Part shown: in pieces, positions 22,032 to 57,297 of the stretch
Layout: each line of letters begins with the position of its first letter
How positions within the stretch are numbered: the stretch's first letter is position 1
Source of the DNA: Octopus sinensis
Taxonomy: Eukaryota
Direction: 5' to 3'
Assembly (NCBI RefSeq): GCF_006345805.1
Contig: NC_043021.1
Coordinates: 23,498,001 to 23,562,000 of the forward strand
DNA length: 64,000 nucleotides
The notes under the pieces: model-generated
The model's input: only the letters and a program-made list of their open reading frames with translations
The model's database searches: none
What the model was told of the DNA's origin: nothing
Program-made: the position numbers and the translations under genes

Positions 22032-22161
22032 TTAATGTAATTTCTTCCACATGGTTGCCAAATCATCGCTAGCGTCGAAGTGGGCTTTGACCCATGGTAT
22101 TAATTTCTCAGCAGATGGCGTATTGCATTCTGAAGATATCTTGGCAATATTATTCCACAAC
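22032..22161 (-). CDS. STC: Stanniocalcin-like gene, last coding exon 4 (to TAA), proximal copy
   Basis: Acceptor ttttttatattgcag|G completes the split ATG from exon 3. Translates as (M)LWNNIAKISSECNTPSAEKLIPWVKAHFDASDDLATMWKKLH*. Same distance to the 10th Cys as STC1 RYYNRLVRSLLEC. Confidence 0.85.
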
Positions 22162-22309
22162 CTGCAATATAAAAAATATATTGGTGTCTTAATCAAACAC
22201 ACTCAGTCAATAACACTCAGACAAACACACACACACACACACACACACACACACACACACACACACACACACACACACACACACACACACACACACACAC
22301 ACACACACA

Positions 22310-25090
22310 CAGTAACAGAGTTTGCTTTTATTGTCTAATGCTAACTCATTTTGAATCTGGAGGCAAATTCAACTCTGCAAGAGGTGGGAAAATACCAATT
22401 CCAGAAGCAAGAAAAGGCGAAAGCAACTGTAGGGAACCTGCTTTCTATATTGCAACAAATCTCACACTAAGAGAATCAAGTGGATTTGACTGGTGGACTC
22501 GTTTTTTTTATCAGAAGAAAGAAGCCACATTTCAGGACTGATTTGATGAGACACTTGTCAGGGGATTACACGTGGCCTCGTGTCCTTTTGTTGTTGCCCA
22601 ACTCCGGCAGAGCGTACAGATTAAGAAGCGAGACACTTGCGACCCTCAGATACTCGCTGAATACGAAAGGGATTCACTACATTGACATGGTTTTAGCCAC
22701 CAACAGAAGAGCGAGCAATATCTCTAAGCAGCTCCTACAATTTCTGTGTGGAGCACCTGAATAATAATCACACGGAATTTCTAACATACAATCCATACCG
22801 CACACTGTTTATTCATCACACCAGGAACAATCATTTTGTTTTATCAACCAATTTTTTAGGAGATTTTTATATTTATGACAGTTTGAATTTACCAGTTTCG
22901 CAGGAACTAATGGCACAAAATCAACGTTGTATTCACCACAAACAAACATTACTCCTACAATTCAACAAGTTCATATAATTAATCCCCAAGTTGGCGCGTA
23001 TGATTGTGGCCATTTTGCCCTGGCGTATGCATTTGAACTGGTCATTGGAAACGCTCCAGGGAAGTTTCTATTTGATCAGTCAAAAATGCGAGCACATTTA
23101 AGATTTTGCCTTGAAAACAATAAATTTGTTCCTTTCCCGAAAGTAAAGGTTTTTCAAATGTCTACAAAAACCACAGAAGACAATGTCTATCACCCACCCA
23201 GAAATGGGTTACCCCTAGAAAGGCGACTAAAAATTATAACTTCTCACGTGAACATTCACAACAAATTTTATCACCCAATAGGTTCCGTGTTTTAAGTGAA
23301 GATTTCGAGCAAATCCCAAAATGTAGTCAGGAATCTAATGAGAAAAAGACTCTGAAAACCACTTGCCCGAGAAAAAACCATCACACTAGAGAATAAGTCG
23401 GTCATAAATTTATCTAAACTAAAACTTTCGCCCGATGATGTCTCAGTGTTAGAGCTTGGCCTGAGTTTTTGCCCAAACACTAAGAATTTCGACAAGAATA
23501 AACTAGCTCAAGGGCTATTTCAGTTTGTCCGGCGTCACAAGCTAAAAGAATATTTTTTTTAAAAAGCTGGTAACGAGGAGTCAGAAAACCCTATGTTTAC
23601 TAAAAATAAAAATGATGATTATCGAATCTGGCATAATTGGATTGAAAAGAATCTCAATTGGTATCCAGATAAGGTTCGGGATGGACGTTCACAGGCATTA
23701 CTAGAATTCCGTAAATCTTGTCAGGCAAGCATTAGAGAAAGCCTTAAGACAAGTGAAAAGGGTCCTGGAATAACCTCACAAATTTCCAACGTTATGCACT
23801 CCGACGTCCAGCTAATAACGATTCTATTGTTATTAACATGGCGAATAAGGGAAGCGCTATCGTAATTATGGACAAAAGTGAGTATATTTCGGCTTGTGAA
23901 GGAGTTTTAACCCCAATTACGGAGAGAAACTTGACAAAATAATTCTGGAAATGGAGGAAAACAATTTCGTTAATAAGGCTGAATCTAAGATTTTAAGGTC
24001 AGAAAGAAGAACACCTGTATTTTATGGTCTCCCTAAAATACACAAAAGAGTTCGAAAGATTTCATCCAATGCGCTCAATTTGCAGCGGATATGAATGTTG
24101 CACGGCCAAAATTTCGGATTGGCTGGATGGCTTTCTACTCCCCGTCGCAAAACGATTAAGTTCATATATTCAGGATACCTTTGATTTTGTATCTGAAATA
24201 AACTTATTTTGAAGCACCGAGACCATATTGAGAACTCTTTTTTGGTAACCATGGATGTTTCATCCTTATATCCTAATATTGACTACAATGAAAAGGTAGA
24301 CGCATGCATGGATGCCTTCGAAGAGCGGTCAAACAAAAGTGTTCCATCAAATTTTCTCTGTAGATTATTGAGGTTTGTGTTAGAAAGTAACACAATGAAG
24401 TTTAGTCAAAGATTTTACTACCAGACGAAGGGTTGCGCCATGGTCACCCCCATGGCAGTTAATTTCGCTAATGTCTTCATGACGAAATTCGAGACACAGT
24501 TACTGAAGATATTGAAATTCCTTCATGGTCATGAACCAATATTCTGGTTTCGGTTCATTGACGACGTATTTTTTGTCTGGGAATGATCACAGGATAGTTT
24601 AATAGACTTCTTGCGTTTCTGTGACTGTTAAGCCCAACATAAAATTTACGTCTAGTTTTTCAAAGAGTAGCGTTGAATTTTTTGAACCCAAAAGTTAAGT
24701 TTTCTGGAGGCAGAATAGTGACAGTTATTTTGCAAAGCCACGTCGTCCCACATTTATCTCCATCGCCGCTCCGATCATCCACATCATCTTATTCGGTCAA
24801 ATCCGAAATCCCAATTTGTGAGGAAAAAATGGATTCGTACTGGCATAGGGGACTACTGGAAACATGCAAATGCTTTTGTATGTCATTATGTCAAACGCGG
24901 TTACAGTGAATCACGATTAAAGGAAATAGCAAATGAAATAGCTAAGATTAGCAAAGATAGTAAATCTACAAGCATAATTTTAGCAAACACAATACAATGG
25001 ATGACAGAATTCATTTAGCGATTAGCTGGAACCGACATTTCGCTGACATTTCAAAAGTGTTGCATGAAACACCACCGCTTCTATTACTAT
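22310..25090 (+). mobile_element. Duplicated copy of the Ulp1-associated Penelope-like element
   Basis: Same broken ORFs (22748..22978, 22927..23295, 24209..24586) as the first copy. Confidence 0.85.
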
Positions 25091-25128
25091 CACCACCAAC
25101 AACAACAACCAAAATAACAAAAACTTAC

Positions 25129-25355
25129 ATTTTATAATGCCTTGATTTGGATGTTTTTATTGGTTCATTGAATAGATACCACAGTTCCTTGCGGTGCTTC
25201 CAGCCAACATTACAGAAATCATTGGCTGTGTAACATTCCTTTTGTATTTTCAGTATCATTGCGTCAACTTTACTACAATCGATTGACGGACGTTTGTAGA
25301 GTTCTGTTAACTTCATCGCGAAACATTTTGTGATACTATTTATCCAGATCTTACC
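25129..25355 (-). CDS. STC: Stanniocalcin-like gene, exon 3 (227 bp; phase 0 to phase 2), copy proximal to exon 2
   Basis: Acceptor aatattcacag|GGT and donor AAAAT|gtaagt. Translates as GKIWINSITKCFAMKLTELYKRPSIDCSKVDAMILKIQKECYTANDFCNVGWKHRKELWYLFNEPIKTSKSRHYK. Aligns with STC1 GKAFVKESLKC...[22 protein letters not shown]. Confidence 0.9.
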
Positions 25356-55045: not shown

Positions 55046-55326
55046 ATATATATATTTATATATATATAAACAGTAATCACTCGCCATATTGCGGTCCACC
55101 TCTCACATACATACATATATGCATGTATGTATGTGTATATTTATATATAGATACATACACACACACACGCGCGCATGCATACACACAGACACACGCACAC
55201 ACACACACTCACACGGACACATATACAGTAGTCACTCGCCATATCGTAGTTTACCTGTCACGTCCTCACTATAGCCCAGGCGGCCAACAGGTATTTACAG
55301 CCTTTTAGATTTTAATTATTTGTGTT

Positions 55327-55737
55327 GGGATCTTTTCGGTTTGAACGGCAGTTTTTAACATAATTTCTAAGTAACTAAAAAATTTTAAACTTCGTATACT
55401 GGTAGAATGTGTTTATAAAATATCTTTTTCTCTTAGCTTTATTGAGAAAATTCTATAGTTTGTAAGATATTTGTTGTTTTTTTCTTCAATTTCTGCAATT
55501 TCAACCAATCACTGACGTATTTAAGGTAAAAATCATTCTGTGCCGTATGAATATGTCCCTCGTTTAAGAATCAGATTTGGTTTATTTACATTTCTGAAGA
55601 TAAAAAAGAATACCCTTCCCCCACCCCTAACCCTAACCCTAACCCTAACTCTAAAACAGATTGAAATGCAATAGATCGATACTAGGGTCATAATTATGGG
55701 TGACAATTTCATAGGATACCGCTTGAAAAAACTGCCG
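55327..55737. mobile_element. Non-autonomous DNA element with partial TIRs and internal (CCCTAA)4
   Basis: cggcagttttt (55346-55356) / aaaaaactgccg (55726-55737); telomere-type repeat at 55625-55648. Confidence 0.55.
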
Positions 55738-57218
55738 CTGTGTTGTACATAATCATTTTTACGTCAAATAATTAATAAACAAATGAAAATACTGTACAAT
55801 ACTGCACTGTATTAATTAAACACTTTAATTAAAATATATTAAAAGAAAATCCGAAGTGTACCGTGGATGAGTAAACAAAGAATCGCACATATTTTATGGA
55901 AAATGAAACTCGGGATGCGAATGTGTGGTGTTGTTTTGCATTTATAATAAAATAAATATCTACAAATTATAAAAATAATAATGATAAATATACGGTACAG
56001 TAACGGTTCTACTTCGCGGATTCTCCCCTTCGCGATGAGTTTGGAACGAAACACCTGAGATAGTCGAAGGATTACTGTATAAACACACACACACACATCA
56101 GGTAGTAATATGCTTCAATTAACAATTTCGCTGTAATTCTTCCGATCGATAACTCCCAATTCATTTCCCTGGTTCATGAATAATACGAGGATTGTAGATT
56201 TCAAGAGATTAAAAGGAATAAGGTGACAGGTACATCATCAATTTTTTTCTTTCAATTTTACAGTTAGTCATACAGCAGTTATCTGGTTACAATGACCAAA
56301 TGTCCAAATAATTATACTGTGTGACCAACTGTAAAAATATTGATAATGTGCCAGTCTCCATATTGCTTAAAATATATACGAGGCGGTACTGAAAACTTCT
56401 TGGTTTTAAGGAGGTCACGAAAGGCTTGGTTGGAGGCCCAACTTTCTGAGTTCTTTTACAGAAGTTAGAAATATATATATACTTAAGGACCGGCCCGATA
56501 AGTTTGTAAATCTGAAAGGGGAATACGGTGAATAAAATCATAATTCACTGATACGTCTGCATTTTGTTTTACCCCAAGCCAGGAACCTTTCAGATCCACA
56601 CCGCCACCTTGTGTGCATGTATATATATATATATGTGTGTGTGTGTGTGTGTGTTGTATGTAGTCGTTGTTTATGACCGCCCAGAAAGATAGCATTGGAT
56701 TCGTGTCTATTATTTCTTATCAATATATTCGACACGTCAGAAGTGGTGGTCAGAAGTACATAACTTTATTACTTGTGGAGCTAAGAATAGTGTCTGGGTC
56801 AGTCAGTTGCGAAACAGATGTAAAATAAATAATATATACATATATATATATATATATATATATATAAATATATATATATATATATATATATATATATATA
56901 TATATATATATATATATATATATATATATATATATATATATATATATATATATATATATATATATACATACACACAACTTATAAATAAGGGCAAACGAAA
57001 AAAATTTCTAATGCCAAATATGCCGAAAATTGGACATATTGTCCATTTACCATATAATTATTTCCCAGTACGCACGTTACTCGAAAAAAGGTCGACAGAA
57101 ATCTCTAAAAAAATTCCATTATTACCATATCGGACCGATTTCAGGGTTAGTTAAAAAAGAACCCTCCCTTCGTCAGTGATATATGTGGCAAAGAAGTAAA
57201 TGAGATACTTACTCATAC

Positions 57219-57297
57219 CCATGGAAGAAGTAAACACTAAGTCATGAGCACAACTAAGTACCCCAAATAAATCCAAAATAGAAATACTCCAGCCCAT
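57219..57297 (-). CDS. Candidate first coding exon (signal peptide) of the STC-like gene
   Basis: ATG at 57297 directly after an in-frame TGA. Translates as [26 protein letters not shown]. Two adjacent donors, G|gtatga (exon end 57219) and A|gtaagt (exon end 57213), are both phase 1 as exon 2 requires. The link across a 20.7-kb intron is inference. Confidence 0.45.

Follow-up and report, generated by a model that had tools for sequence, protein, structure and literature searches.

A stanniocalcin-family gene with ancestral intron positions in a tandem array of octopod paralogs, and its possible exocrine role

Several short minus-strand exons in a stretch of octopus DNA of 64,000 nucleotides (the window, meaning the whole of the stretch analysed) raise the question of which protein they encode, and whether this protein acts as a hormone of the octopus itself or has an exocrine role. 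Positions 22032-36551 of the minus strand almost certainly hold exons 2-4 of an octopus gene of the stanniocalcin (STC) family, coding for a small, predicted secreted protein. Exon 2 (36551-36394, 158 nt) is bounded by a canonical acceptor and donor (tttttcAG and GTAGGT), is entered in phase 1 and left in phase 0, and codes for (A)ITKEC...KLTDV with Cys1-Cys5, all inside the Pfam match described below. Exon 3 (25355-25129, 227 nt) also has canonical splice sites (cacAG and GTAAGT), is entered in phase 0 and left in phase 2, and codes for GKIWIN...SRHYK with Cys6-Cys9. The coding part of exon 4 (22161-22032, 130 nt including the stop codon; acceptor ttgcAG) is entered in phase 2 and codes for (M)LWNNIAKISSEC...WKKLH with Cys10, ending in a TAA at 22034-22032. 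A candidate polyadenylation signal, AATAAA at 21860-21865 on the same strand, was found by pattern search only and lies 166 nt past the stop codon. The initial annotation had joined these three exons through junctions 36394/25355 and 25129/22161, which leaves a phase 0 intron 2 of 11.0 kb and a phase 2 intron 3 of 3.0 kb. The canonical sites, the continuous reading frame and a near-identical public protein all bear out this structure.

The public protein is annotated in O. vulgaris (P0001, 206 aa) and bears the name of O. sinensis LOC118767948. In a tblastn search, exon 2 corresponded to its residues 36-88 at 98% identity and exon 3 to its residues 89-164 at 100%; exon 3 is also fully identical to that of O. 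vulgaris. The coding part of exon 4 is likewise identical to its O. vulgaris counterpart. Altogether, 170/171 of the residues encoded by exons 2-4 match, the sole difference being N for K in ELT(N/K)KL. At the nucleotide level, exon 2 differs at 1/158 positions and exons 3 and 4 are 100% identical. Mismatches between the window and O. vulgaris amount to 1/515 nt in exons versus 54/2665 (about 2%) in introns (Fisher p 0.0013), an agreement well beyond chance. Judged from these alignments, the window gene is shown to be the ortholog of the O. vulgaris protein, and to be an intact gene under selective constraint between the two species. It had been described as hidden; in fact the gene model had been publicly annotated before, with PF03298 attached and the name 'uncharacterized protein', and the call is correct but of modest novelty. 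The source had been guessed to be probably a cephalopod, and the window is indeed 97-98% identical to OX597838.1 of O. vulgaris, an octopus.

Membership in the STC family, as proposed from the letters alone, is supported by both sequence and predicted structure. Pfam PF03298 (Stanniocalcin) was matched at 41.5 bits (E 1.3e-10), above its curated gathering cut-off of 23 bits, with residues 26-142 of the protein aligned to positions 33-144 of the 200 in the profile. Among PDB entries, phmmer matched human STC2 chains (E 8.6e-5) with nine cysteines aligned directly, and a profile search against STC2 (E 1.3e-24) aligned the tenth cysteine and the end of exon 4 to the C-terminal Cys10 region of STC2. 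In characterised STCs, ten cysteines pair as five disulfides. The ten-cysteine core claimed for the octopus protein is complete (P0001 positions 41, 50, 55, 62, 75, 99, 115, 129, 136 and 176), and each position is invariant or at least 90% conserved across 131 homologs. This pattern is the feature by which family members were recognised by Roch & Sherwood 2011 (PMC5654410). The mature protein of about 188 residues, with the ten family cysteines, is all-helical in the AlphaFold model (pLDDT 86.4, pTM 0.78). The four best PDB matches of this model in Foldseek are all STC2, with probabilities of 0.97-1.00, TM-scores of 0.44-0.58 and weak E-values of 0.011-0.17, and the next match has a probability of at most 0.12. 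STC2 is the only specific structural match of the predicted model. Both the profile search and the structure comparison, which had been suggested as checks, returned similarity to STC.

Intron positions provide evidence on the origin of the gene. The vertebrate comparison was read from genomic STC1 loci of mole-rat (97% identical to human) and gar. Intron 1 lies in phase 1 in the codon 5 residues ahead of Cys1 in octopus, mole-rat and gar alike, a position that an alternative 'AEV' alignment would move by one codon. Intron 2 lies in phase 0 directly ahead of the conserved G-K, and intron 3 in phase 2 in the codon 12 residues ahead of Cys10, again in all three. The positions and phases of human STC1 introns, as given in the initial annotation, agree with the mole-rat and gar loci, and its proposal of ancient conserved introns holds for all three of them. 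Because every position and phase has been kept, the gene is a descendant of the ancestral bilaterian STC gene. This match shows that octopod STC-like proteins, any venom ones included, are descendants of ancestral STC and not convergent mimics.

The first exon is another matter. An intronic ORF adjoining an (AT)n tract (57297-57219, minus strand) had been taken as exon 1, giving an intron 1 of 20.7 kb and a product of 197 aa. The ORF and its GT are present, but O. vulgaris has CT at the donor GT and the public model uses another, distal exon 1, and the candidate was rejected; it had been flagged from the outset as the weakest link. It is highly improbable that 57297-57219 is a genuine alternative first exon in the species of the window, used beside or in place of the distal signal-peptide exon. 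Although it offers an ATG, a 26-codon open frame, a G/GTATGA donor in phase 1 fitting exon 2 and a moderately hydrophobic core in its peptide, chance alone would yield such an ORF and GT in 27 kb of intron. The CT of O. vulgaris, moreover, occurs where the corresponding exons 2-4 are spliced to the distal exon, and a distal-type exon 1 is common to all paralogs at 89-97% identity. The peptide itself has weak signal-peptide features, with no basic n-region at its N-terminus, an Asp within the hydrophobic stretch (h-region) and an extra unpaired Cys.

The annotated O. vulgaris exon 1 codes for MLKLFSIILLQWALTSQG, followed by FYF..., and ends in phase 1. By inspection and hydropathy, the N-terminus of the ortholog, MLKLFSIILLQWALTSQG before F, has the look of a classical signal peptide, encoded in an exon outside the window. 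A search for the annotated exon 1 sequence within the 64-kb window found it absent there. Synteny puts the true exon 1 about 2.3-2.4 kb past window position 64000, since window position 63267 corresponds to 13156 of the O. vulgaris locus L001, where exon 1 lies at 10001-10106. In O. vulgaris the true intron 1 spans about 29.8 kb. The 3' part of this intron (36552-64000, minus strand) runs off the window and contains many transposon remnants and microsatellites. ORFs matching reverse-transcriptase, Pif1-helicase and GIY-YIG were seen in this stretch.

The window also contains second copies of exons 3 and 4, which had been overlooked earlier. Self-BLAST revealed a tandem segmental duplication (period about 14.3 kb), in which copy A (14312-27683), holding the exons 3 and 4 described above, is about 99% identical to copy B (1-13304), which is cut by the window start. 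In copy B, exon 3 (10987-10761, minus strand) and the coding part of exon 4 (7782-7653, minus strand) are exact matches, with splice sites as in copy A. The junction between the copies, at about 13301-13304, falls within a 3-bp microsatellite. If the duplication were real, it might disturb this gene or the next one downstream and leave a pseudogene or chimera. O. vulgaris has only one copy of this region (L001 53.2-66.1 kb), and the junction interrupts the stretch in which its annotation begins the next STC-like gene, both of which would fit a damaged locus. Such damage is nevertheless very unlikely. Copy A retains the order exon 2, exon 3, exon 4 and AATAAA with intact splice sites, so normal expression would be possible. 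The copies differ by about 1%, as expected for two haplotypes set in tandem, and assembly errors typically place a junction in a microsatellite. In the neighbouring model, the 'first exon' encodes no signal peptide and seems to be an artefact of gene prediction.

Compared with vertebrate STC1, the octopus gene has the same ten-cysteine frame, helical fold, putative signal peptide in an exon of its own and four coding exons with phases 1, 0 and 2. In neither is there an equivalent of Cys120 of STC2; the STC2 segment RFGCISRKC aligns with YKRPSIDC of the octopus protein. Unlike STC1, which is a single conserved gene, the octopus gene is one of several tandem paralogs, and its product is only about 17-20% identical, has five additional residues from Cys9 to intron 3 and lacks the long C-terminal tail. 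The N-glycosylation sequon conserved in vertebrate STCs (N-x-S/T) occurs nowhere in P0001, and there is no 11th cysteine, the dimer-forming one of vertebrate STC, after Cys10; with only ten cysteines in the mature protein, a disulfide-linked homodimer like that of STC1 would not form. Among solved structures, human STC2 in its PAPP-A complexes (PDB 8a7e, 8a7d, 7y5q and 8hgh) matches best by sequence, but the octopus protein differs from it in lacking both Cys120, which bonds covalently to PAPP-A, and the C-terminal extension, and the TM-scores of the predicted model are only moderate. The absence of Cys120 accords with the account of invertebrate STCs by Kjeldsen & Oxvig 2025 (PMC11925022).

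Among lophotrochozoan STCs (oyster 'Stanniocalcin-2' K1PDI7, Mytilus 'Stanniocalcin-like protein', and those of Argonauta, chiton and Owenia), the likeness extends to family, length class, ten cysteines, AE(V/I)T..C before Cys1 and LW.N......C around Cys10. The exon 4 motif LWxN..xxxC was also found in Argonauta, chiton and other lophotrochozoan homologs. In contrast to these proteins, the Cys4-Cys5 loop CG..GY....G..YC is replaced in the subclade of the window gene by the shorter, charged CNDDLRKGEAHAHC, and the gene lies within an octopod-specific expansion. Molluscs have been known since 2011 to possess this family, and the gene, taken singly, is an ordinary member that had been annotated before.

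The window gene belongs to a tandem array of STC-like paralogs that are octopod-specific and lie on the same strand. Neighbouring STC genes sit on the same strand of O. vulgaris OX597838.1, where the relatives of LOC118767942 and LOC115224535 are also located. LOC118767942/49/50 are all on a single chromosome of O. sinensis. A rough NJ tree groups the octopus paralogs into a single clade. Between paralogs, exons differ by 8-25%, whereas the adjoining introns are 95-100% identical (mismatches 84/515 versus 90/2567; odds ratio 5.4, p 1.4e-23), and identity falls sharply at the exon edges. Exon 1 is 95% identical between paralogs. As aligned, the mature-peptide exons are strongly diverged, whereas hardly any difference is seen in the signal-peptide exon, in the cysteine frame or in the introns. 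Between species, the exons of orthologs are nearly invariant. For the paralogs, dN/dS is 1.03-1.37 and dS is 0.16-0.22, synonymous sites having diverged as much as non-synonymous ones. With dS as high as dN, the contrast may reflect old paralogs with homogenised introns and not accelerated exon evolution. The introns show signs suggestive of gene conversion, and ten sites in intron 2 cluster by species and not by gene. Gene conversion that homogenises the introns explains the contrast at least as well as accelerated evolution of exons does. The array represents a compact case of how tandem families of secreted proteins stay distinct while their non-coding parts are homogenised.

In conotoxin superfamilies and snake venom PLA2 genes, a conserved signal exon and conserved introns accompany hypervariable mature exons. 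The octopus array resembles these venom families in its tandem arrangement, in exons several-fold more diverged than introns, in the retained signal and cysteine frame, and in a dN/dS of at least 1. It differs from them in the near invariance of its orthologs between sister species and in its equally diverged synonymous sites.

In vertebrates, STCs act as inhibitors that bind pappalysin proteinases, and in fish they lower Ca2+ uptake. The octopus protein would be secreted and act extracellularly as an STC-like ligand or inhibitor, and the paralog array would most likely be exocrine, belonging to the STC-like 'doppelganger' superfamily SF5 of the octopod salivary (venom) gland. An SF5-type protein would mimic the STC of fish or mollusc prey instead of serving as a hormone of the octopus itself. 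The full account, an STC-family gene together with an exocrine paralog array, may be regarded as evenly balanced, and an exocrine or venom role of the window gene itself stands at or just short of even. Koch et al. (bioRxiv 10.64898/2026.02.02.703354) report that stanniocalcin mimics (SF5) are among the secreted-protein transcripts expressed at high levels in the salivary glands of O. bimaculoides and H. maculosa. The likeness to these toxins, which are octopod, secreted and built on an STC-like cysteine frame, is a circumstantial link through the shared species O. bimaculoides; proteins of that species share 64-67% identity with the window protein. In a protein collection that includes public RNA-seq assemblies, all five matches to this protein or its closest paralogs stemmed from genome annotation sources and none from transcripts, which argues against very high expression in the sampled tissues. 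Additionally, orthologs almost identical between species give no sign of a current arms race. Kjeldsen & Oxvig 2025 (PMC11925022) deemed an STC-pappalysin interaction unlikely in invertebrates, and this counts against the inhibitor mechanism.

With somewhat less than even confidence, the gene may instead encode an endogenous hormone or paracrine factor of the stanniocalcin type, regulating ions or growth, with paralogs sub-functionalised by tissue. Family membership and the ancestral gene structure fit this reading, as does the strength of purifying selection in the comparison of O. vulgaris with the species of the window. Invertebrates, molluscs among them, widely possess STC homologs that carry signal peptides and are presumed to act as secreted regulators (Roch & Sherwood 2011, PMC5654410). 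However, an octopod-specific tandem expansion with dN/dS of at least 1 between copies and a conserved signal exon would be unusual for a housekeeping hormone, and octopus venom glands are reported to contain STC-like proteins. Invertebrate STCs typically have a hydrophobic stretch from Cys4 to Cys5, which was lost in the subclade of the window gene; LOC118767942-like, Argonauta and chiton proteins keep it and seem more plausible as the canonical hormone. The label 'hormone' is an assumption, and a salivary-gland (venom) role seems at least as likely.

As to how an exocrine array could have arisen, it is tentatively suggested, with distinct reserve, that the ancestral STC gene of the octopus itself was recruited into the salivary (venom) gland as an octopod-specific tandem array. 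Under what would be an unusual regime, gene conversion would have homogenised the introns and the signal exon, selection would have kept 'islands of divergence' in the mature-peptide exons, and each paralog would be conserved between species. Recruitment from the octopus's own STC gene would be indicated by the fully conserved intron positions. If true, this would explain the genomic source of the stanniocalcin 'doppelganger toxins', listed but unanalysed in the 2026 preprint, and the mechanism by which they diversified. A further observation concerns the neighbouring genes: the public models of at least two of these paralogs miss the true last exon, and with it the tenth cysteine.

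Gene A, a stanniocalcin (STC)-family gene on the minus strand of the window, has its exons 2, 3 and 4 at 36551-36394 (158 nt; tttttcAG/…/GTAGGT, slashes marking exon borders), 25355-25129 (227 nt; cacAG/…/GTAAGT) and 22161-22032 (130 nt with the TAA stop; acceptor ttgcAG/), exactly the coordinates and splice sites proposed in the initial annotation. Joined to the first exon proposed there (57297-57219), they form a 594-nt open frame of 197 codons, and an AATAAA lies 166 nt past the stop codon. Five octopus proteins came up when 5.8 billion proteins were searched. The best of these, P0001 from O. 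vulgaris (206 aa, PF03298), takes its name from O. sinensis XP_036369325.1 / LOC118767948, an 'uncharacterized protein', and equals the proposed peptide from the split-codon Ala onward, save N for K at one position. The gene call was sound, for a gene which is already a public model with a different exon 1. In the papers searched, neither LOC118767948 nor its neighbours nor the O. bimaculoides accessions are mentioned.

The N-terminus of P0001 is MLKLFSIILLQWALTSQGFYFRTELDWEAEQKPQK, which on its residues reads as a classical signal peptide, and not the 26-residue peptide of the proposed exon 1. In O. vulgaris the locus (OX597838.1:39351976-39420546, here L001) aligns to the window, in reverse orientation, at 97-98% identity, and its four exons lie at L001 10001-10106, 39940-40097, 55272-55498 and 58442-58571. 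With window position 63267 aligned to L001 13156, the true exon 1 is expected about 2.3-2.4 kb beyond the end of the window; with all five octopus homologs as tblastn queries, no match to the annotated exon 1 was found within the window. The region of 57297-57219 is present in O. vulgaris, but the donor G/GT is G/CT there. Additionally, its peptide has no basic N-terminus and carries an Asp within the hydrophobic core, and it was rejected as the first exon. A minor role for it as an alternative exon in O. sinensis is a remote possibility.

Against Pfam Stanniocalcin (PF03298), the product of the spliced exons scores 41.5 bits (E 1.3e-10), above the curated cut-off of 23, in agreement with the family assignment first made from sequence. 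Among solved structures, the only significant relatives by sequence are the human STC2 chains of PAPP-A complexes (E 8.6e-5); in that alignment nine cysteines pair one to one, and the STC2-specific Cys120 has no partner in the octopus protein. A profile built from the five octopus proteins retrieved 172 cluster representatives among 1.84 billion proteins, including octopus paralogs (LOC118767942, 49, 50, LOC115224535, LOC106876190, LOC128250809) and proteins of Argonauta, chiton, oyster ('Stanniocalcin-2'), mussels ('Stanniocalcin-like protein'), whelk, the annelid Owenia and amphioxus, the last being multidomain proteins. In the 131-sequence alignment, the ten cysteines and the Gly opening exon 3 are invariant or at least 90% conserved. 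AlphaFold on this alignment gave a confident all-helical model (pLDDT 86.4, pTM 0.78), superseding an unusable run with the five octopus sequences only (pLDDT 44.7). A structural comparison, as had been suggested, gave STC2 for each of the best four PDB matches of the model (probability 0.97-1.00, TM 0.44-0.58), the next match standing at a probability of 0.12. Family membership and fold are established for gene A, and the orthologue carries a probable secretion signal. Unlike vertebrate STCs, the octopus protein has neither the 11th, dimerising cysteine nor an N-glycosylation sequon. Invertebrate STCs have a hydrophobic stretch between Cys4 and Cys5 (Roch & Sherwood 2011, PMC5654410); the gene A protein has lost it, whereas LOC118767942-like, Argonauta and chiton proteins retain it. 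The amphioxus proteins P0130, P0131 and P0133 (466-699 aa) contain two STC-like stretches apiece, and for two of them the annotation also lists phospholipase A2-like or lysozyme g domains; either true multidomain fusions or the merging of gene models could account for this.

Intron positions were compared with borders read from the genomic STC1 loci of mole-rat (97% identical to human; read directly off the translated sequence) and gar. Intron 1 (phase 1) interrupts the codon five residues ahead of Cys1 (mammal …AAQNS G/CG EVLRC; octopus …KPQK G/CT ITKEC), intron 2 (phase 0) directly precedes a conserved G-K (…FDTQ/GKAFV; …LTDV/GKIWI), and intron 3 (phase 2) interrupts the codon 12 residues ahead of Cys10 (…FSN AG/A YYNRLVRSLLEC; …HYK AT/G LWNNIAKISSEC). 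Gar agrees by direct reading for introns 1 and 2, and for intron 3 in position (N-R-Y), the feature compared there. The vertebrate-like positions that had been claimed, and the human STC1 structure cited in their support, are accurate, and the conservation holds. If the lophotrochozoan 'AEV' is paired with the vertebrate 'AEV', a one-residue gap arises and intron 1 is offset by one codon with its phase unchanged. Introns are not discussed by Roch & Sherwood (2011, PMC5654410), and none of the papers searched treats stanniocalcin exons across amphioxus and tunicate.

Exons 3 and 4 of the window are 100% identical to those of O. vulgaris, and exon 2 is one base apart. Mismatches amount to 1/515 in exons against 54/2665 (~2%) in adjoining introns (Fisher p 0.0013). 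Judged from this contrast, the gene A exons are under purifying selection, and the gene is functional. A pseudogene was ruled out by the intact frame, the intact splice sites and the exon constraint, and a chance ORF by the Pfam match, the orthologue identity and the selection signal.

Exons 3 and 4 occur twice in the window with identical sequence and splice sites, since 1-13304 and 14312-27683 are tandem copies, ~99% identical with a period of ~14.3 kb. The duplicated segment comprises these exons plus the downstream intergenic region, and is single copy in O. vulgaris. At the junction (~13301-13304), the 3-bp microsatellite of intron 2 meets sequence located 7.6 kb downstream of the stop in O. 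vulgaris. With 1% divergence and a junction inside a microsatellite, the two copies may stem from a very recent duplication, or the assembly may have set two haplotypes one behind the other.

Gene A belongs to an array of paralogs. In O. vulgaris the next STC-like gene begins 7.3 kb downstream, and gene C (encoding P0005) follows ~51 kb further on along the same strand; in O. sinensis, LOC118767949 (gene B) is a close paralog. In a rough NJ tree all octopus paralogs group together, and Argonauta branches as their sister. The gene A model itself, being public, is of modest interest, and it is the exon-island pattern of this array that merits follow-up. Between A and genes B and C, the intron sequence flanking exons 2-4 (600-900 nt on each side) is 95-100% identical, whereas exon identity is 75-82% for exon 2, 78-80% for exon 3 and 92% for exon 4, the shift falling sharply right at the exon borders. 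Pooled mismatches between A and B are 84/515 in exons and 90/2567 in introns (odds ratio 5.4, p 1.4e-23). The signal-peptide exon is also 95% identical between paralogs. Paralog dN/dS is 1.03-1.37, and dS, at 0.16-0.22 (Nei-Gojobori), is several-fold greater than intron divergence. Over the 600 nt preceding exon 3 on its upstream side, identity of the window is 97.3% to O. sinensis gene B and 95.8% to its own O. vulgaris orthologue, and ten intron sites group the window and B against O. vulgaris A and C, by species and not by gene. This grouping reads as a signature of within-species gene conversion, and suggests O. sinensis as the source of the window. On the preferred reading, the paralogs would be older than their intron similarity implies, their introns and signal exon would be undergoing homogenisation, selection would keep the mature-peptide exons different, and every paralog would be conserved between the sister species. 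An alternative, which the data fit as well, is accelerated exon evolution of the type described for venom genes.

The LOC118767949 model (164 aa) ends in YYKM and a stop by read-through of an AT/GTAAGT donor, and the P0005 model has an unrelated C-terminus; both miss the true last exon. In each gene an intact phase-2 copy of exon 4, encoding Cys10 and closed by a TAA stop, follows exon 3 downstream, at a distance of 6.2 kb in LOC118767949 (L004, its locus, 28902-29031) and 3.4 kb in the P0005 gene (L005, its locus, ~28867-28981). The start of the next O. vulgaris STC-like model (184 aa; L001 65874-66146) maps to window 13301-13573 on the minus strand, directly followed by duplication copy B (1-13304); its first-exon peptide, MLQQAEISEDSDN..., does not resemble a signal peptide, and this exon is probably an artefact of gene prediction. 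From O. bimaculoides A0A0L8GL32 (P0002), the first 41 residues match window 2780-2908 and 17054-17182 (minus strand) at 72%, and also have two matches in L001, in both orientations. In view of these multiple matches, that first exon is probably a repeat-derived mis-annotation.

What the gene A protein does we infer throughout. Vertebrate STCs inhibit pappalysins and reduce Ca2+ uptake in fish gills (PMC11925022). In octopods, stanniocalcin mimics of superfamily SF5 are among the highly expressed secreted transcripts of the salivary (venom) gland, and the absence of STC from crustaceans points to fish or mollusc prey as would-be targets (Koch et al., bioRxiv 10.64898/2026.02.02.703354). For gene A, a putative salivary-gland role has close to an even chance: the STC tandem expansion is lineage-specific, dN/dS between paralogs is at least 1, the signal exon is conserved and the Cys4-Cys5 loop is derived, but orthologues are nearly invariant and no transcript-derived gene A protein was found among the 5.8 billion proteins. 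A putative endogenous hormone or paracrine factor is a tentative reading, somewhat short of even. Apart from exon 1, the initial interpretation was essentially right, 'hormone' being a putative label.

The introns are crowded with transposon remnants, including non-LTR reverse transcriptase ORFs (RVT_1, zf-RVT) and a Pif1-helicase fragment (Helitron-like). Remnants lie at 58016-59596, 9811-10218, 24209-24586 and 61151-62430 on the plus strand, at 32093-34000 and 38853-39512 on the minus strand, and at 12117-13115, 26494-27494, 29214-30026 and 44261-45328. One fragment combining reverse-transcriptase-like sequence with a weak GIY-YIG match is possibly Penelope-like, and one ~1-kb element has at least 4 copies in the window at 95-97% identity. 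Long microsatellites occur at 57354-57828, 22200-22250, 12092-12200, 13195-13304 and 27600-29050. An (AT)n tract lies directly upstream of 57297-57219 and a (GT)n tract shortly upstream of exon 4, trinucleotide arrays are seen at the duplication boundary, and a local tandem repeat of ~670 bp spans 27190-29030.
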